Origin: Pelomyxa schiedti
Taxonomy: Eukaryota; Protista; Evosea
Reading direction: 5' to 3'
Length of the DNA: 48,872 nucleotides
NCBI GenBank assembly: GCA_020536535.1
Contig: JAHLWZ010000146.1
Span: 1 to 48,872, forward strand
In this document: positions 2,120 to 44,380 of the stretch, one piece after another
How positions within the stretch are numbered: the stretch's first letter is position 1
Layout of the letters: every line of letters begins with the position of its first letter
The notes under the pieces: generated by a model
What the model was told of the DNA's origin: nothing
What the model saw: only the letters and a program-made list of their open reading frames with translations
Databases searched by the model: none
Translations under genes and position numbers: made by a program

Positions 2120-2980
2120 TTGGAATCTTTCCTGCCATGTCTGCGACACGCTGCTCCTCTGAGCTGTCGTACCTTACTGCTCGGTTTGCTCGTAGACGAA
2201 CAAATTAAGCTGTACGAAGACCACCTATTGTCTGTGGAACAGCGCCTGAATCCGCCCGACAGCCGCGATCGCCCATCCGCGCAACTGGAGATCGCTTTGA
2301 GGAACGAGCACGCTGCGGTATTCAACGCGACTTATGCCTTGCACTCCGAACTGGCTGAAGTAAGACACGAGATCTCTATGGTACGAATGGGTACAGGAGA
2401 AATGAAGACTACACAACGTCAGTCGGTGATCACCACGACTTCGTGAAGTAACCAAATTCTCTCATTACAGCAAAAAAAAAGACCCATATTTCTTCCGTCA
2501 CATGGCACGTTCCAATCCTCACCAAGTTGTGGAAGATATCGATAAGAATTTGCATATTCAGATGACTTCGTCCACAGAAATTGTCTTGAGTCCATGGTGC
2601 ATACTTTCTCTGATGAGGTCCTTGAGAAACCACGATATATCCCCACATCCAAAAAAGGTTGTTCTTCTTCTGGATTTGCATGGCACAATGGTGTACATTG
2701 AGTGACCCACCCCTCACTTGACTTGGCTCCAAGTGCTGAATCTGTGGGACGAGCGCTTGTTGATTTCCTGGTTCCTCTGGACGATGGACGTGTCAAGGTG
2801 GTTCATTGGCGGAATGCCACCTTCAATCTGCTACTTCTTCTGCTATGGTGTTCATTGGAGGATACATTGTGTTATTCTCAAAGGAATGTGAAGGTATTTT
2901 TTACAGGAAAAGAAATCGAAAAATCGAATTTCACGCCAGAATTGAACTGGAAATTAATGATAAGGTCTATCACCAGGTAG
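2120..2980 (+). CDS. Hypothetical protein with helical segment and possible degenerate HAD/FCP1-like motif; may be a fragment
   Basis: Consecutive ORFs 2120-2446, 2502-2705 (KKVVLLLDLHGTMVY, resembling HAD motif I DxDxT with D>H) and 2702-2980. Confidence 0.25.
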
Positions 2981-5900
2981 TCTGGCCACGGCGGTGTACA
3001 ACAATGAAGAAGTACTCTGTGGTGTCCTTGACTCCATCTTCCATTACTGTGAAACCTACACTCCTGAATTCCGCAAGAAGTATGCCGCTAGCGCCACCTA
3101 ATTGCATGGCGTCGTACCAGCTCCATCGGCTTTTCTCGTCAGACACGAAGATATATCCAGTGGGCTTGCATATTCTCACGGCCTCTTTTATGGCTTCCTG
3201 AACGAATTCCGGCCTGGCTCCACCCCAGCCCAGTGACATGCAGAACACAACAATGTCGAAGGAATGTTCCTGGGCTCCAGTGGTTCTAAAGTCACACTGC
3301 ACTATCGGGTAATCAGTGGGTTCCTCAGCATACAGTGCGTGGTCATAATTGGTAACCTTCCCCATGATTAGTTGTTGGTAGTATTTGAGTAAAGTCAATG
3401 AACCTGTATTTGAGGGTTTGTGTCCAGGTATCTTGCCAGTGCGCAGGTTCCGCAGCCCATGTCCGCAACCTTACATGAAGTCGGACCAGACAGGGAACGA
3501 ATGAATTTGGCCGCTCGTGCTGATGGAATTACTTCATCGGGGGGTTGTCCTGGTCTCAACACTGTACGAAAATTCTCGTCTTGAAGCTTATGTAAGTCCC
3601 TCCACTCATCAAGTGTCTTTCGGTCATTTGACAATTTCAGATGGAGTTTCTTGGGATCCATGGTTGTCAAGCGCTGAAGAAGGGTATGAAGTTTCTCTTC
3701 GTTCTTGTCAATAGGTGGAAGATTAAAATGTTGCACAAGGAGTTCAATGAAGCAAAGGTAAGCCCCGGTCTTGCCAATATGTGGTTCAGCGGCAATCACA
3801 AATCGCTGCTTCAGTTTGGATGCCAAAATTGAGGTGTTTTCCAGTTTCCACAGGTTCCTGTCAGATTGCTCCCAGATAAAATCGGGGTGGAAAAACCCAG
3901 CAAGTGATTCCGGTTGTGGCTGGTCAGATCCCTTCAACAGTAAAGGTGAGCTCTAGAAGGCAAAAAACCAAAAAAGCGGGTTACACACTTGCTCTGGTCT
4001 GTCAGTCTTCTTCAGGCAACGGTCCAGTTGACCATCCGAATCCCTGAGGGCCGCAACCGGATTTTCTGCATATTTGTATGCAGTTGGATTGAGAAGCACG
4101 CGCACACACTGTGAAGCTGGTGTATCAGCCTTGCACCACTTGAATGCACGTCCAATATCCTGCATAAAAGCTGCAAATGCGAACTTTTTTGACTGGTAAC
4201 GCGCCCTAAGGTCAAACAGCTTGAGGTGGCTTGGCATTGTGTCTCCCATTCGCGCCTTGTTGAGAGAAAATCAAAGTGAAGTTAACTCAAGTTACACATT
4301 GTCACAATTGGTAACCTTCTCAACCAGAACAAGTAAGAAAGGGAGTCCCTCAAAATCCTGGTAACTTTTGACCACAGCGTTGTTCGTCTGTTGTAATTCT
4401 GCGAGTTTTGAAGCGCAACTCTTACTGACCAACGTTTTGGAGCAGATGTCACCCCCCGAGCCAATTGCGTTATGAACACAGAAGAACCTGTCTTCTTTCA
4501 TTCCAACCAGGAGCCGTGAGATAATCTCGCCATAATAACGCGATAGTCTACTCGGGAGCCGCACAGCCACCATGCCCCCATGTTTAAGCCATCTAACTGC
4601 CTCCAGTGTATAGGGACAATCTACTATCTGAATCCATCTTGCATCTGGAACTGCTTCACCATACTGTGGAACGAGTCTTAGTTCAATTAGAAATAAATCG
4701 TACCCTACCTCTTCACAATGCCGCTTGATGAACGCTGCGGCATAGGCCATTAGGCTCACGAAAGTGGTCCAGTCACCGGAGTCCATAAGTTTGCTATATG
4801 TTGATGTACTATCATCAGGATCATTTGGAAAAAGCTCCTTGCAAAGTTCCTGGCAGGTCCCTGGGGAAATCAAGTCACTTTTCAAGATGCATTGAAGATC
4901 CATCAGTTTTCGGCGGCCCATGTACTCCATTCCAGTTTCAGGTGTTGCCGTTGTCATCCACCCGTGCACGTGCTTCTCAAGCAACCCAGCGATATTTGAG
5001 AATGATTGCTTCAGCAGTTCAATCTGGTTCCACGCTGTGGCTGATATCTGAAGTGTCAGCATATTGGAGCCTGGAGTCACAAGGGCCTTCCTGAGGATGG
5101 AACTAATGCGACCCAATTTCCTATCACCAGGCTTCCTTGCTCCCCAATGGCACTCATCATATATGATGACAAAGAAATGATCGGGAAGGGACTTGCACTT
5201 TGCAGCTTTCTCAAAGAATGCCTTTGTCTTCTTTTTGCTCTTATGATAATTGTTACCCTTGACAACACAGATGCGGAGATTTCTCTTCCCAAACTCACTG
5301 GCGATGTGTTTCTCAAAGCTCTCCACTCTTTGGTTGGTCTCGTTGTACAGTGAGTTTTGTGGAGGTACCAAAATCAGGACGTCCAAGCTACGGCATGAGT
5401 TGGGGAATTCGTTCCAGTTCTCCTTGACCCTCTTGAAAAAGAGATTGGCCTCTGCCATCTGTGCTGGGAATACTTCGTACATGGAAGGTGTGCTCAAGGG
5501 TTGTGTGCCGTGGTGTGGTTTTGATTTGATATCACGCATGTCTACTGGGGGAAGGACCTCTCCATATTTACTAAGGGATCGTAACGCCTCTCTTACACGG
5601 TTGATGACAGTGTCTATTTCACTTTGACTGAGGGTTTTTTTTGTTGTTTCCAGCTATTAAAATTCGCATAAAAGACAGCAAACACAGAGAGGAGATGGTA
5701 AAAGTTAGGAAGAGCTTCCTTGTTTTTTTTTTTACCTTCGAAATGTTTCTTATATGTCCCGCGTGTAGCTGCTGGGCGGGGAAGTCAACTCCACAATGGC
5801 GACATCGCCAAAGCGTATGTCCTTCATGTTTCTGTTCTTTCTGGTGTCTTCGAAGGGACGGACGGTCCTCAAGTACGACTCTACAGACAGAACAGACGAA

Positions 5901-6689
5901 GGCGGCACTTGTCCACGGTATCGTGTTGGAGGTGAGGGTAGTTTGTTGTGGTGCTTGCAACGCCTGAGAAGCTGCGCTTGAGTGCGAATCATTTGTGACT
6001 GTTGGTTGCGGTGGCTGTGTTTGTGGAACCGGCTTTTTGTGTTCACTGTTGACATGAGCGGTAAACTTCTTTCTTTCGCTGTCTTGGAACGCAACCTTGG
6101 GCCCGCAGATGGGGCAGATCCAGATTTTCGACTTGTGCGGGCATTGATGCGCGGCCCACTTGGCGTTGTCGACCCGCTTTTTGCACACGCCGCAAGCGAG
6201 AACGGAGCTTATCCTCGGACCTCGAGCTGGAGTGCCGACCATATGCGTGCTGTCTGGGGACAATGGCGCAGCAGGGAGATTATCAGGCGGTGGTGGTGGA
6301 ACAGCGGCGGCAGGACCGCGCTTCGGCGCGGGCGCAGCGACTTGGGAGTCACCGCCAAGAGAGACGGCGGAGCGTTTCTGGGGCAGTGTGGCGTCGTCTT
6401 GGCTTGGAGGGATCGCTGGGGAGGACCTCCTGCGGTGGCGATGGTGATGGTGGCGACGGCTGTAGTCGGCGTCTGCTGCTGATGGAATATCGGGATCCCT
6501 AGCAACCTCCGCACTTGTACTCGTTGTAGTAGTTGTGGTTGTGGTTGTGTTTGTGGTTGGTGTGGCGGTTGCAGATGGGGTTGAGCTCGGGCTCGGATGG
6601 ATATCCGGGGGAAGGACGGGTTGGATGGTACGATCAGAAGGCGGAAACGATAGCGATGGTGGTGGGGTGCGTCCTGCCATGAGATGCAT
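2970..6689 (-). CDS. C2H2 zinc finger + circularly permuted SF2 helicase (GREB1-like) + Rrp8/NML-like class I SAM methyltransferase fusion, ~1160 aa
   Basis: Exons 6689(or further 5')-5736, 5653-4316, 4255-3989, 3952-3404 and 3356-2970 are joined in frame by four phase-0 GT-AG introns. Motifs in order: four CxxC..H fingers; LILVPPQNSLY (Ia); IIYDECH (II); ISAT (III); EKARMGDT (V); QDIGR (VI); then AAEPHIGKT (Walker A); then VADMGCG, FDIVVFCMSL and EAVRICKPTG (methyltransferase). Start codon uncertain. Confidence 0.8.
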
Positions 6690-8094
6690 GGCCTTGGTTG
6701 CCCACGACCAACACCCCACGGGAACTGTATGGATCTGAAAAGTTGCTTGACTGTTTTTTGGGCCCCAAGAGTTGTTCCGAGTTGCTTTCGAACTGAGTGA
6801 TTGTGGAACCAGCTGAGGGTCCAAAAGACCCCGAATATCAAGGTGTGGAGCCACACTGGCCCATCATGGGTTGAATTCTGGAGAGAAGTAGAAGTTCCAG
6901 AACCATCATACAAGTGGAGGTTGTGTTCTCAATGGGGACACTGGGTTGCAGTAAGGTGTTCTGCAGGATTCTGCTGGCCGTTTCAGTGTCACATTTGGTC
7001 ACTTGTGAAACCCCTACAACAGGCAAAAAAAAAGGTTTTCCATTCAATTTTCCACACTCCTCTTTCTTGGTGTTGGAGATGGTGTCTGGGATGTAATGGC
7101 CACACATTGGGTTTCTTCAGAGTGGGGCCTGCTTGAACATTTGCAGTACAATTGATTGATACTGGCCACCAAGTTAGTCAGCCAAACAACAATTACTCAC
7201 ACACCTGATCAATTAAGCACTTGCCAACCCAGTCAGGCTTCATCCAGCTTACTCCTTTTCAGAAATGCCTTTTTTGTGGGTTTTAGGGGATGAAACTTGC
7301 AAGTTTCAATAAGTTTGGGTTTTTGTTGGCTCAGAAGAACACTGTTGGCTGTTGGTGGGTTTTATGTGGTTTAGCATGGAATTGTCAAAGGGGGAACATC
7401 ACCACCCAAGAGTGTAAAGGAAATATCTGTCCCTAAGGGAAAGGAAACTGCACAATAACAAGAGTGCAGGTAGCCAGGAGCTCCTTGGGAACTTTGAGAA
7501 GTAGTTGATTCAGATCATATTTTCTTGTCTGAGAGGACTGACATCTTGCTGATCTGTGAACTAGACAATAAGGGCACTTTCTGGTACCTTGTGTGAGCAA
7601 TGAAATCGAGTATGATAGCAAAAATCTCTCTGTCACTCTCAGAAAGCATGAAAAACAGAATAGGAATCCTTTGCCAGGCATTCTTTCAAGGACAAGTGAG
7701 AGGCACAAGGGCATGTGTGAATCAATCACACATGACTTGTATTGTGGATTGAGTGAATTGCAAAACAACCACACACAGCACATATGACGTAAGGCAGTTA
7801 AGACATTATATGAATGGACCAGGAGTAGAAAGAAAACAGATTGGCTGAAAGAGCAAAAAAATCTGAACACTGTGCTCCATTCACAAAAGGTACAGCCAGT
7901 TGCTTCAACAGAACCAGAAGAAAAGTAAGGCCAGCCACCATACAAGAGGACCTTGTTGCCCTGGAGTGAGTTCGAGCTGCACAACAGAGAGTCAAGCATA
8001 GTGGAAGACTTCAGCTGTGAGGAGACACTGCAAGGCACGGGAAAAAAAAAGGAATCTGTATGCCAGAGAGGCATCCACACAGTGCTTTTCTGTG

Positions 8095-8638: not shown

Positions 8639-9833
8639 CTAGTGCTTCCCCTTTTGTGCTTGTGGTTGATCGGAAAGGGATCTGCCATCACAAGCAACAA
8701 TTTTTACCTTAGATGAAACAATTGGTGTTATGATGGGATGGGGAAGTCGTTAGGAATTGTACCTTATCATTGCATTCCAGAACCTCATTGCCTGTTTTGA
8801 AAACAGGTTTATCAAGAATCCATGTCCATACATTATCGCACCCTCTATAGGTTTGGAGATGGCCCTATATTTCAAGGTAATTATAATGATAACAAATATT
8901 AGGAAGTAAGTACATTGAAGGTGAGCTTGGTCTGAACTTGATTCCTTAATGCCTGTGCAACAGACTGTTCTAAAGTTAGAACTTAGGAAACTTAAGAAAA
9001 GGGAGTTATGGTGGTGTGACTAAAATAGCATTTAAAAAAGTGACCTTGTCGAATTGAGTCAAAATTTTTTCCCTAAGTGAGATAGGGATTTGTCCGCCAC
9101 TTGATAAGTCATCCAAGGTATCCGTTAGGGCCGTTCCCAGTGAAGACTTCCGGTAAAATGTGTACATCCCAGCCCTCCCACTGTTGACCATTGTAGGAGA
9201 TGGTGGTGGTAAGCTCGGAACAGGTGATTGAATTGGAGAAGGTATTGGCGATGCCACTGGTGTGTAGTGCAACATCCCACCTCCAGGTGATGATGGACTT
9301 CCGGGGTTGTTTGGCATACTCATGTACATGTGGCCTGGTGGAGGGCTTGTTACGTACGGTGACGCCGAGGCACCCGGGTGCCGAAGTGCCTGTCCAGTGT
9401 GGTACGCCAAGTTGTGGTGTTGCATTTGTTGCAGCTGCATTTGCCGGGACATGATAATTTGCTGGGGGATACGAGACTGGGGAGGTAGCATCATTCCGCC
9501 CATGCTCATGCCCATTCCCATTGGCATTCCCGGTCCAACACCCATTCCCATCCCGTGGTGCGTTATTACATTGGGCACAACAAGAGGCGGTGACGAGGCG
9601 CCGGACGAGAGTGCTGCAGCAGACGGCGACGGCGAAGGAGGCGGAGAAGACGACGTAGTAGAAACGGAGCTGTACTGGGGCGAAGGAGTAGCGGGCGGGC
9701 TCGGGTTCCCGTTGTTGTTACTAACGCTAGTTGTGGTCGATGTGTTCGCCGTGGACGTAGATGCAGTCGGACTTGTGCTTCCTTGTGGATTCCCATTCGC
9801 ATTCTGCGGCTGTGTCGCAGCGTACGAGGCCAT
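8639..9833 (-). CDS. GTF2A2: Transcription factor IIA gamma (small) subunit with long low-complexity N-terminal extension
   Basis: [17 protein letters not shown]...ILTQFDK | SVAQAL...KLTF | [17 protein letters not shown] | VKIVACD across four exons; TAG at 8639-8641. Confidence 0.9.
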
Positions 9834-10088
9834 TCGGTGTTGGTAATCAATAATAAAAACAAAGAATGAAGGAAAGATAGCAACTAGGAGAGGAAAACTG
9901 ATCGCAGGGGATTACTGCCAAACCAGAGACAGATTCTGATCCAGGGTGTTTCTGCGCTGGTTGACAAGCGAAGTAAAACCCCGGACACTTCAGAATCCAA
10001 GTGTCCAGGTGAGCTACTTACCATTTAATTAAAACAAACCAAAACTCTTTGGAGGGTGATTGCTGGTCACTCGCGGCGAAAGATCAAG
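9834..10088. promoter_or_regulatory. Probable bidirectional promoter between TFIIA gamma and GCN2
   Basis: About 255 bp between two divergently oriented start codons; no specific element verified. Confidence 0.45.
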
Positions 10089-23371: not shown

Positions 23372-25362
23372 TTATCTCAGACTGTTGTTTTTGTGTATAC
23401 ACCAGCAAGCCACAGCACCACTGCATGGCTTTTCGGTTTTCATCAGAACAAATGCAAGGCACAAAGGTGACTTTGGGGGGAATATAGCCATATTACGTAG
23501 CATGTTGGACTGTAGTTGAAAGAACTTGCGGCGGAGTAGTTCTTTGGCCTTTTCCCTGGTGAATGATTCAGGAATGTATGCAACTTCACAGATTAGTTGG
23601 TCATGTTTTGTTCCTCCGGTGTTGTCAGAAACATGAGACGGTAAAAAATCTGTGCCACATAGCAAATCTTTACTTTCCGGGTCATTCGGGAGAAACATGT
23701 GTAAGCTGTACTGAGTCTGACATTGGTGAAGGAACGTGCTTGCTTGTTTACTGCTCTTAAAGGTTCCCAGGCAATCAATTTCCCTGCTTAAATCCTGGAA
23801 ATTCTGCAGTTCCAGCCCGCAACGATCTGATAACCACCCTCTGACCAGATTTTCAACAAACAAAGATTCACCCAGCTTCTTTTTTCCAGTATTGCCGCGC
23901 TTGTGGCTGAACAATTGTGTTGTGTCCCCAGAAGCCTTGGAAGAAACCGGACTTGCAGGGACCGGAACCGGACTGCTGCCACTTGCAGGGCTAGGCTTTA
24001 TGGTTTTTTCTACATTTGGATGGTACGGTAGAATTTCTCGTTGTCCTGGAGATGGTATTCTGTCTGTATTTCCTCCTTCACAGTGGGCTGCTGTCTGTGC
24101 TGCCACTGGAGCTGCTGTGCTTGCAGTAGATATTGTGGGATCAAGGACCTCATCCTTTGGGCAGATAATTTCCACAAGTGGAGAAGAAACTTCCTGGCAA
24201 TGTGCCTCACACAACAGTTTAGCCTTGTCCAGCCAGGTGTGCTCATGGTCCATAGATTGCAAATTCTGTAGTAATTTCAGCTTGCGCAGCAACCCCAAGA
24301 TCCTGTTTCTATTGAAACTGTCAGAGCTGGAACTGTAAGAGGTGCCAGTAGAAATTAAATCTCTCGGAAAGGAAAGCCCATGAAAAATAAAGCAAAGTGA
24401 TTGCAAATCACACGCCATTGTAAGGAGCCCCAGGTGCTGGAAGATTGACGCCCAAAGAGCATTCCCTCGGAACGCCATCGAGTAATCAAACATGTCAATT
24501 GTGAAGGGCCCCATACTTGCTGCTGTAGTGGTTGCAGTTACGGTTTCAGCTGCGGTTGTGGTTTCAGCTGCAGTTGCAGTTCCGGCTGCGGTGGTGTTGC
24601 TTCTAATTTCAGCTAAGTCAAAATCCACTATTTTAACTGGAGAAGTAGGGTCCGGTGGCACGATAATATGCTGAGGCTTCAAGTCCAATATTATCACTCC
24701 AGAGCAGTTAATTGTCCATACGGCGCGTATTACCCGCGCTGTGCACTGAGGATCAACCACGTGGATCTTGTTCAAATGAGAATCTCCCACATCTTGCACG
24801 AGAATAGCCTTATGACGGTCTTGACCATTGCAAAATTTTCCAACCACCACACACGGTGAAATGTGCTTTGCTGCTTTAGTAAAAGAAAGAGTTTTGTATG
24901 CCGTGATTTCCCCTTCACTCAACAGCTTGAGAAAAAACTTCACCCTGCCTGGCCGTGCCGTCAAGTCCCCAGGAACAGCCGCACTCTCTGTCACCGTCTC
25001 GTCAGTAGCAAAAATCACATAATATGCGCCCATATACAACCGTCCCGTGGGGCAGACATCAGGGTTATTGAGATTCGGTACTTGAGCGTCCGGTTCGAGA
25101 CGTAAAGTGTTACCACTGTAGAGTGGTCCCACCTCACGGTCGCTCGTAGTGGTAAACAGAACCTCTTCAACAAAGAAAGTACGTTGCATTCTACCGGTCT
25201 GTTATGAGTGTGAATTCCCGTAGGGAGGCATGTGTTGAGCCAAATGAGACTTGTGGAAATGGGAGAACAGACCTTCACGTAATGCTGGACGAGGACATTA
25301 ATGACAATTCGATCTGCAATCTCTTGATTACTTCTTTTCGAATACAAGATTGGCATGGGCAT
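23372..25362 (-). CDS. Divergent protein kinase (CK1-like features) with additional C-terminal domain
   Basis: Exon 25362-25273 spliced in frame to exon 25198-23372. Motifs FFLKLL, GVIILDLKPQHII, VKIVDFDLA, FRGNALWASIFQHLG, CDLQSLCF. Confidence 0.75.
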
Positions 25363-39517: not shown

Positions 39518-42691
<3,174 letters not shown>

Positions 42692-42992
42692 CCCACTGTG
42701 TTTGTTATTGGTTTTTAATTCGAATTTTAAATTGCACTCTGATGATGGAACCGAGCCTAAATGACAGAAGAAAATTACTCTGCGAATGGCACTGGTTGCC
42801 TGCCCACATGTTATTGCATTAATTCTCCACAAAACATCATTTATTCGCACAGGGTCTCTGTGGTCACCGGATCTCTGATGCGAAACGTACGCGGGATCTC
42901 CCTTTCTGCGATCTCCCCAACAGTTGGGGTCCGAACAAAATGTGCAGCACACAACAAGAAGGAAAACACATTTAATTAAATCATCACTCGCA

Positions 42993-44380
42993 ATGAGGAC
43001 CGTTCTAGCGGTGTTGGTTTTTGCAAGTGCTGTGCTGGCTGTGGACGACTTTGTTTTGTTATCCAACAAAGTGGGTGCTGTAACTAGCATCTCCTTCATC
43101 AATGCCACACACGGCTTTGTTGGCGATGAATTGAAAATCATGCGCACCACTGATGGTGGATACACATGGTGTGCCTTGTGAACTTTAGGTTTTTTTTTAC
43201 TTCCAACTGATTTTAGGACGGAATCCTTGATTGAGGGAACTCAAGCAGCAAGGTACTTGGACGTTGTGGCTTCTGGCAAGGTTGTTGTGGCAACTGGGGT
43301 TGGCGACTCCAGTGCTATTCCTGGCACTTCTTACAGCCTCAACGCTGGAATTTTCTTCAATAAGACTGACGAGACGTATTTCCACCCCACTTGAGAGTTG
43401 TTTCCATAACGCTAGGTGCTAGGCATCTTCGCCAGCAGTGGTACTCCGTTGAACCTATTAAGGGTGCTGACGGTTCTTTCGTGAAGACTGGCCAATGGAG
43501 CGACCTCGTTGGAGGAGACGGAAATGGCGTAGCAACGTCTTCGTAAGTTTTCACAGTCAAAGGTTTCATGCTATAACTCGGCTAAGAAATGGCGGAAAGT
43601 CATGGACAGATCACAACTGGGGAATTGACACTCCAGCTCGGTTTGCCTCATTTGTCAGCACAGCAAAAGGATGGGTTGCTGGTGGTGAATTGCCCGATAT
43701 TTCTGACAATTCCACTCGTGCTGTCATTGCTTCAACAACTGACGGTGGTTGGACTTGGAAACAACTGACTGACACAACCCAGTATCAACTTCCATACTTT
43801 TTACGAAATCCTAAGCTCCATAGATACTATAACAATGGAATTGCATTTGCTTCCGAGACTGTTGGGTGGGTTATTTGCGTTACTTCTGATGGTACTCCCC
43901 ACTATTTTCTCTTTGCTAGATTAACTCTTTGGAAGGGTCAATCATAAAGAAAACGACAGATGGTTGTATTTTTCGCCAGGCCTTTCTTTTCTAACCAGAA
44001 TCAAGCGGGCAACACCTGGATCACCCAAGTTACCACCGATCAAGTGATACTCAAAAAGCTTTGGATGCTTAGTGCAACTGAAGGCTGGGCTGTTGGTATT
44101 GATTCCTTGTCTTCCCACACGTGTCTGACAATACACCAGGTGGGTACCAAGACGGAATTATCTACCATGGGCAGATTCTCCACACCACCGACGGTGGTGT
44201 TAGTTGGCCTTCATACGCTATTCGTGGTGTATGTGTCCTTTACTTCAGATTTCATTCCCAAACCACACCCCCCAGGTGATTTTCAATGATATTGCTGGTT
44301 CAGATTCTACCCACGTTTGGGCCTGTGGTGTTTCTGAAAGCAGTGATGGTGGTGTTGTGTACCAGTGGGTAAAAAGCTAG
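42993..44380 (+). CDS. Secreted BNR/Asp-box (Ycf48/WD40-YVTN-like) beta-propeller protein
   Basis: Signal peptide MRTVLAVLVFASAVLA; repeated TTDGGYTW, NGGKSW, STTDGGWTW, HTTDGGVSW and F....GW motifs; TAG at 44378-44380. Confidence 0.8.

Follow-up and report, generated by a model that had tools for sequence, protein, structure and literature searches.

The architecture of GREB1 was reportedly defined by Iyer et al. in 2013. Its permuted superfamily 2 (SF2) helicase module is hardly known outside animal GREB1, in which its purpose is unclear and it is described as dead, the human helicase being described as inactive (PMC7968844). The second enzyme relevant here, Rrp8, is the m1A645 methyltransferase of 25S rRNA, and the motif I glycine of the yeast enzyme (G209) is needed for binding S-adenosylmethionine (SAM) (PMC3553958). 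Relatives of both are joined in Pelo_1690 (KAH3766433.1), a protein of 1142 amino acids (aa) annotated as hypothetical and encoded on the minus strand at 2970-6689 of contig JAHLWZ010000146.1 from the anaerobic amoeba Pelomyxa schiedti, whose genome assembly (GCA_020536535.1) is described in PMC8887013. The 48,872-nucleotide (nt) stretch of this contig that was analysed is referred to as the window.

Pelomyxa schiedti transcribes and splices this gene for one chain of fingers, helicase and methyltransferase. From sequence and structural models, we lean towards reading Pelo_1690 as a single-chain nucleic-acid base methyltransferase coupled to adenosine triphosphate (ATP), most likely acting on adenine N1.

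Gene structure and transcripts

The protein sequence at NCBI is reproduced exactly by a model of six exons and five introns (Table 1). The original prediction, made from the DNA letters alone, had described four phase-0 GT-AG introns that join stop-free pieces into one protein of about 1160 aa. All four are GT-AG and phase 0, the pieces have no internal stops and the single polypeptide stood, but the length is 1142 aa in the NCBI model and a fifth intron (intron 2) had been overlooked, which was read through because it is 45 nt long and in frame. Intron 4, which had been placed at 3953-3988, spans 3932-3988 (57 nt), the predicted acceptor being an upstream in-frame AG that lies 21 nt early. 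Removal of intron 2 is required to keep the frame in the paralogue on contig C1121, and the position of intron 3 is common to the paralogues and two unassigned contigs.

The RNA data, two single-cell runs (X1 and X2) of one sample from one study, showed depth over the gene and none on its flanks. RNA contigs skip introns 1, 2, 3 and 5, and intron 4 is skipped in a paralogue that is 87% identical in DNA and shares words with Pelo_1690, so that some RNA contigs are mixed. RNA sequence specific to this copy was seen at the intron 1 junction, at the poly(A) end and over 3455-3877 and 4418-4585; the junctions of introns 2, 4 and 5 lie on contigs with paralogue letters, and that of intron 3 is assignable to neither copy. 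The poly(A) end was marked by 21 untemplated T on the plus strand of an X1 contig, an RNA contig was identical to the window over 2927-3252 in exon 6, and one RNA contig kept part of intron 1. Neither splice joints nor a poly(A) end of Pelo_1690 appeared in the DNA-type runs. Every junction was thereby seen spliced by RNA-seq, partly on paralogue-lettered contigs, in keeping with the joining that had been predicted.

A permuted helicase followed by an Rrp8-type methyltransferase

Pelo_1690 matched cpSF2-GREB1 (PF20692) with 155.7 bits against a cut-off of 26.2, in three stretches that follow the model order through exons 2-4, while Methyltransf_8 matched the last exon. Along the chain, the motifs are ordered as a Q-motif-like helix (aa 378), motif Ia (408), Walker B DECH (484), SAT (522), motif V (748), motif VI QDIGR (781) and Walker A (886), and Walker A was C-terminal to motifs II-VI in the 8 proteins compared. 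The Pfam score and the Walker A placed after motif VI bear out the predicted GREB1-type permuted module. Since the Q-motif-like helix remains N-terminal, the rearrangement may correspond to a moved Walker A element rather than to a strict circular permutation. GKT, DECH, SAT and QDxGR are kept across the family, and a fish GREB1 is without DExH.

An AlphaFold (AF2) model of the core (aa 372-1142), calculated from an alignment of 43 rows, reached a predicted local distance difference test (pLDDT) of 83.8 and a predicted template modelling score (pTM) of 0.80, with a strand-loop-helix at Walker A; the single-sequence fold of Pelo_1690 had a pLDDT of 39. On the helicase side, Foldseek returned SF2 translocases, namely the double-stranded RNA (dsRNA) enzymes MDA5, Dicer and DRH-1 together with EcoR124I HsdR and LlaBIII, with template modelling (TM) scores that were all low.

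For the C-terminal domain, the match to Methyltransf_8 (PF05148) scored 51.7 bits against a cut-off of 27. Human nucleomethylin is the best solved relative by sequence (E 7e-8; profile E 6e-13), and its structure 2zfu is the best structural match (Z 22.3; rmsd 2.6 for 190 aa, which include its N-terminal helices), followed by matches with Z 16.9-17.0. The resemblance to Rrp8 and nucleomethylin that had been read from the letters was therefore confirmed by sequence and structure, and all the motifs quoted for it were found. H952, G997, D1019, D1036 and C1053 align with residues that we take to be the SAM contacts of nucleomethylin. No TAGT glycosyltransferase was found in Pelo_1690, nor any TAGT gene in the Pelomyxa genome, and the methyltransferase comes directly after Walker A. 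The glycosyltransferase is replaced by a methyltransferase, as had been proposed.

A canonical Rrp8 with the motif RFRxxNExLY is a separate gene on Pelomyxa contig C213 (113+47 bits, vs 52 for Pelo_1690), which settles the earlier question of whether Pelo_1690 was the sole Rrp8: it is not. Because this gene exists and RFRxxNExLY is lost in Pelo_1690, the latter is by its sequence Rrp8-like but not the rRNA Rrp8 orthologue.

The N-terminus of exon 1 is Pro/Thr/His-rich and of low complexity, with basic patches resembling nuclear localization signals, ahead of four finger-like units (Table 1). Four C2H2-type fingers had been predicted; four units are present, but complete C2H2 fingers are found in two of the four only and all fall below the Pfam cut-offs. 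Finger 4 is complete in the paralogues on C97 and C1659. N-termini vary among homologues, with C2HC-type fingers in Mastigella, whereas Echinamoeba and two contigs have Cys-rich modules; protein P0006 (locus L032) has an OTU-like deubiquitinase domain where the fingers stand, on a contig without introns. The earlier idea that DNA-reading fingers were an addition is not supported, since GREB1 itself already bears an N-terminal Zn-binding domain (PMC7968844) and this module varies among homologues; the fingers of Pelo_1690 are putative DNA readers.

Copies, relatives and genomic setting

The assembly searched (52.4 Mb, 5337 contigs) holds seven genomic copies, which are spread over five contigs and include a tandem group of three; every copy has the fingers, the helicase and the methyltransferase, and intron positions are common to them. 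The ratio of nonsynonymous to synonymous substitution rates (dN/dS) was 0.13-0.63 in 22/22 segment comparisons, methyltransferase included, and all seven copies are under purifying selection. Among 1.84 billion representatives searched, there were 19 matches. The helicase and methyltransferase chain also occurs in Mastigella eilhardi, Echinamoeba exundans, the aphelid Amoeboaphelidium protococcarum and contigs L032, L033 and L073; the transcriptome-derived Mastigella P0021 and Echinamoeba P0016 and the uninterrupted open reading frame (ORF) P0006 carry both domains in one chain. In the helicase tree, methyltransferase-bearing and TAGT-bearing proteins were split with support of 99/97, in a tree with long-branch warnings and two TAGT rows only. 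Permuted cpSF2 relatives were found neither in viral contigs or prokaryotic genomes by pattern scan nor in phages by tblastn, these scans being insensitive. The PHROGs search and a word-index homologue search with exon 2 alone as query gave no matches, and NCBIfam gave weak generic ones only.

The close paralogue L028 (contig C1121; P0001) is named "bifunctional metallophosphatase/5'-nucleotidase" at NCBI, apparently from a neighbouring gene, and its NCBI model omits part of motif VI. Metagenomic locus L073 (2545-8373) carries cpSF2 and an Rrp8-like methyltransferase in two frames with an altered motif I, and an ORF downstream weakly matches SET and endonuclease VII, which may point to a mobile-element setting.

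A structure search of the ESM Atlas returned as first match a cluster of ResIII, Helicase_C and Methyltransf_8 proteins (1498 members, 56% bacterial, TM 0.32), and a search with the methyltransferase domain led to Crinalium and Rhodococcus plasmid proteins made of DUF4379 zinc-finger repeats, an SF2 helicase in ordinary order and Methyltransf_8. Scans gave 27 bacterial loci and 5 loci from viral collections, one of these a named giant-virus metagenome-assembled genome, with the helicase in the same frame in nearly all. Most of the bacterial fusions carry zinc fingers ahead of the helicase; the myxobacterial L059 additionally has a MmeI-type DNA methyltransferase and L058 an added sigma70 region-4 domain. 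These unpermuted fusions of SF2 helicases with Rrp8-like methyltransferases in bacteria and giant viruses are new, and no paper was found on the bacterial DUF4379-helicase-methyltransferase family. The read-translocate-modify layout claimed as novel for Pelo_1690 is thus not unique, although the replaced effector and the permuted motor stand.

A D-H after strand 2, W..xH and (I/V)P are common to the Pelomyxa family and the bacterial and viral fusions, and Rrp8 differs. By the methyltransferase profile, Pelomyxa Rrp8 (65-69 bits) ties with the viral and bacterial helicase-fused versions, and the methyltransferase tree lacks support, has long branches and includes only one Rrp8 row. When the permuted helicase was compared by language model, its nearest look-alikes were giant-virus ResIII proteins (0.96). 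HHalign probabilities of only 4-13%, in native or re-ordered form, gave no support to a direct descent of this helicase from the fusions of bacteria or viruses. Since the profiles tie, the tree is unresolved and the helicases have no special relationship, either the layout arose repeatedly or the connection is too ancient to be seen by sequence comparison.

The segment duplicated between the window (2910-6886) and L028 (3060-7032) consists of the gene with ~200 bp upstream and 60 bp downstream; its introns are kept and the neighbourhoods are unrelated. An 18-nt imperfect inverted repeat at its edges (2930-2947/6870-6887) was considered as a sign of a mobile element and treated as chance, because the close paralogue lacks its upstream arm and the other copies have neither of the two. 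Just upstream of the gene, both DNA-type runs contain a 162-nt deletion variant (6790-6951), and 7208-7400 has high, repeat-like depth. A TFIIA-gamma gene with a long Pro/Ser/Met-rich N-terminal extension lies at 9006-9911 (-), and the ORFs at 42203-43165 (-) and 23372-25189 (-) have weak nSTAND3 NTPase and protein-kinase matches. Elsewhere in Pelomyxa, the C5 DNA methylase family PF00145 is matched by at least four loci, on C902, C151, C829 and C1048. A search for TET/JBP gave no match, and its control gave none either.

Table 1. Features of the Pelo_1690 gene in window coordinates, and coordinates of the unpermuted counterparts
Feature	Position	Strand	Remarks
Exon 1 (aa 1-318)	5736..6689	-	low-complexity N-terminus and four finger-like units; RNA contig identical to the window over 5736-6060
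Finger 1 (aa 166-185), CxxC...HxC type	6135..6194	-	Pfam below threshold
Finger 2 (aa 192-217), C2H2, BED-like	6039..6116	-	zf-BED E 0.0017, below cut-off
Finger 3 (aa 266-288), C2H2	5826..5894	-	zf-C2H2_4 E 1e-4, below cut-off
Finger 4 (aa 296-312), CxxC...HxxH	5754..5804	-	without normally spaced last His
Intron 1 (82 nt, GT-AG, phase 0)	5654..5735	-	spliced in RNA run X1 on window-specific sequence
Exon 2 (aa 319-633)	4709..5653	-	Q-motif-like helix, motif Ia, Walker B, motif III; cpSF2-GREB1 and ResIII matches
Motif Ia	5360-5386	-	exon 2
Walker B DECH	5144-5158	-	exon 2
Motif III SAT	5036-5044	-	exon 2
Intron 2 (45 nt, in frame)	4664..4708	-	skipped in X1 and X2; spliced in NCBI model
Exon 3 (aa 634-749)	4316..4663	-	second RecA-like lobe as far as motif V
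Intron 3 (60 nt)	4256..4315	-	interrupts motif V; skipped by RNA contigs
Exon 4 (aa 750-838)	3989..4255	-	remainder of motif V; motif VI QDIGR
Motif VI QDIGR	4139-4162	-	exon 4; second Arg absent
Intron 4 (57 nt)	3932..3988	-	NCBI model; spliced RNA of 87%-identical paralogue
Exon 5 (aa 839-1014)	3404..3931	-	relocated Walker A, then Rrp8-type helical subdomain, SAM motif I DMGCG
Walker A strand-loop-helix	3764-3790	-	exon 5, after motif VI
SAM motif I DMGCG (aa 995-999)	3449-3463	-	exon 5, glycines intact
Intron 5 (47 nt)	3357..3403	-	skipped in RNA runs X1 and X2
Exon 6 (aa 1015-1142 and stop)	2970..3356	-	rest of class I SAM methyltransferase; Methyltransf_8 E 3e-9
3' untranslated region	2929..2969	-	ends at poly(A) site near 2929
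Bacterial DUF4379, SF2 and Rrp8-like methyltransferase	L038:3100-6510; L039:3284-7534; L040:3494-7534; L046-L072		some on plasmids
Viral-collection ResIII, HA domains and Rrp8-like methyltransferase	L041-L045		1250-1490 aa

Proposed activity and comparison with known systems

As an ATP-coupled base methyltransferase, Pelo_1690 would work in three steps. The variable N-terminal module would help to choose the target, the two RecA lobes would bind and hydrolyse ATP and move along or locally open a duplex, and the methyltransferase would pass a methyl group from SAM to an exposed base, most likely adenine N1 as in Rrp8. Adenine N1 is buried within the Watson-Crick pair, which would explain the fusion of a methyltransferase to a motor. 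DNA and structured or double-stranded RNA appear about evenly balanced as substrates, and the rRNA site that canonical Rrp8 modifies is probably not the target. Patchy distribution, expansion to seven copies and the existence of mobile-element counterparts favour a role in marking or disabling invading or repetitive nucleic acid over housekeeping. A fuller version is doubtful, in which a eukaryotic lineage related to the giant-virus and bacterial helicase-methyltransferases would use ATP to open DNA or dsRNA and write N1-methyladenine on invading or repetitive nucleic acid.

Several points weigh against a base-modifying motor. GREB1 proved to glycosylate protein and to have an inactive helicase (PMC7968844). 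The methyltransferase branch lacks the second Arg of motif VI (QxxGRxxR), and its ATPase could be weakened by this. On the methyltransferase side, the Rrp8 surface motif RFRxxNExLY is lost in the whole Pelo_1690 family, the His before motif I is replaced in 4/7 paralogues, and loci L034 and L035 appear to have the methyltransferase truncated or lost. No nuclease or other defence partner was found near Pelo_1690.

Some of these points would suit a GREB1-like scaffold, whose SF2 module would bind nucleic acid or chromatin while its C-terminal domain would act as a protein methyltransferase or simply as a SAM sensor. GREB1 O-GlcNAcylates a protein though its domain derives from DNA-base enzymes (PMC7968844), the SAM-pocket residues vary among paralogues and motif VI is incomplete; yet we regard a scaffold as unlikely, as Amoebozoa and an opisthokont, unlike vertebrate GREB1, have retained Walker A, Walker B and motif III, and the nearest characterised enzyme acts on RNA. 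Another alternative is a housekeeping role, either as a second Rrp8-like m1A writer for another site in rRNA, tRNA or small nuclear RNA or as a ribosome-assembly factor whose motor remodels pre-rRNA, with which the near-equal profile scores of Pelomyxa Rrp8 and the helicase-fused versions and the dsRNA translocases among the Foldseek matches would agree. Patchy distribution, seven copies and fast divergence are, however, untypical of housekeeping RNA enzymes, a canonical Rrp8 is present and the rRNA-facing motif is gone from Pelo_1690, which makes this role quite unlikely.

Gene-sized duplication into differing neighbourhoods, the giant-virus ResIII look-alikes of the helicase and one metagenomic homologue that is split and lies near a SET/endonuclease VII-like ORF recall a remnant of a mobile element or endogenous virus that does little today. 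This is very improbable and largely refuted by RNA and dN/dS: the five spliceosomal introns have positions common to the copies, transcripts are spliced and polyadenylated, and dN/dS is below 1 throughout. The neighbours are moreover ordinary eukaryotic genes (TFIIA-gamma, kinase), the copies share no terminal repeats, and no cpSF2 match was found in the viral or prokaryotic collections. It is scarcely credible that finger, helicase and methyltransferase are separate genes wrongly joined; no single RNA contig across the whole gene was found in runs X1 and X2, but every junction is spliced and P0021, P0016 and P0006 each hold helicase and methyltransferase in one chain.

If adenine N1 in DNA or dsRNA is the target of these helicase-fused methyltransferases, this would be a new kind of programmed modification, and the fuller version would mean that m1A is deliberately written outside rRNA and tRNA, for defence or as an epigenetic mark. 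The protist cpSF2 proteins, which keep the main ATPase motifs and have another enzyme attached, are predicted to offer a testable and probably active version of the module, and they suggest that the permuted SF2 is a general motor delivering nucleic-acid-modifying enzymes. Together with the bacterial and giant-virus proteins, they point to a group of helicase-fused Rrp8-like methyltransferases that has gone unstudied.

Both domains of Pelo_1690 are already known as Pfam families. Their combination is unnamed in the databases searched and no paper describing it was found, although the 2013 paper on the GREB1 architecture, outside the reach of the literature search, may mention such fusions; within that scope, the statement that no protein of this architecture had been characterised holds. 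PADLOC gave only a generic match, to the mad2 methyltransferase. The Type ISP and IIG restriction-modification enzymes (LlaBIII, MmeI) likewise place target recognition and methyltransferase in a single chain, in Type ISP with an SF2 translocase, but Pelo_1690 belongs to another methyltransferase family, has FCMSL as motif IV and contains neither a nuclease domain nor the NPPY/DPPY motif of amino-methyltransferases, so the suggested kinship with helicase-methyltransferase restriction-modification systems is reduced to analogy. Krueppel-type C2H2 DNA-binding arrays differ from its N-terminus, where TGEKP-like linkers are absent and the two complete fingers stand in separate pairs. The bacterial and giant-virus fusions have the ordinary SF2 motif order and another finger type, whereas Pelo_1690 is permuted.

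With Rrp8 and nucleomethylin, Pelo_1690 shares the fold including the N-terminal helices, motif I, the acidic residue after strand 2, CD(F/M) and FCxSL, but it is fused to a helicase, has lost RFRxxNExLY and is far more divergent. With GREB1 and GREB1L (PF20692 and PF20691 TAGT), it has in common that Walker A comes after motif VI and is itself followed by a modifying enzyme, and that the N-terminal region binds Zn or is finger-like. GREB1_N and GREB1_2nd, present in fish GREB1 (P0023), are absent from Pelo_1690 (P0022), which in place of TAGT carries an Rrp8-type methyltransferase and, in contrast to GREB1, keeps its main ATPase motifs.

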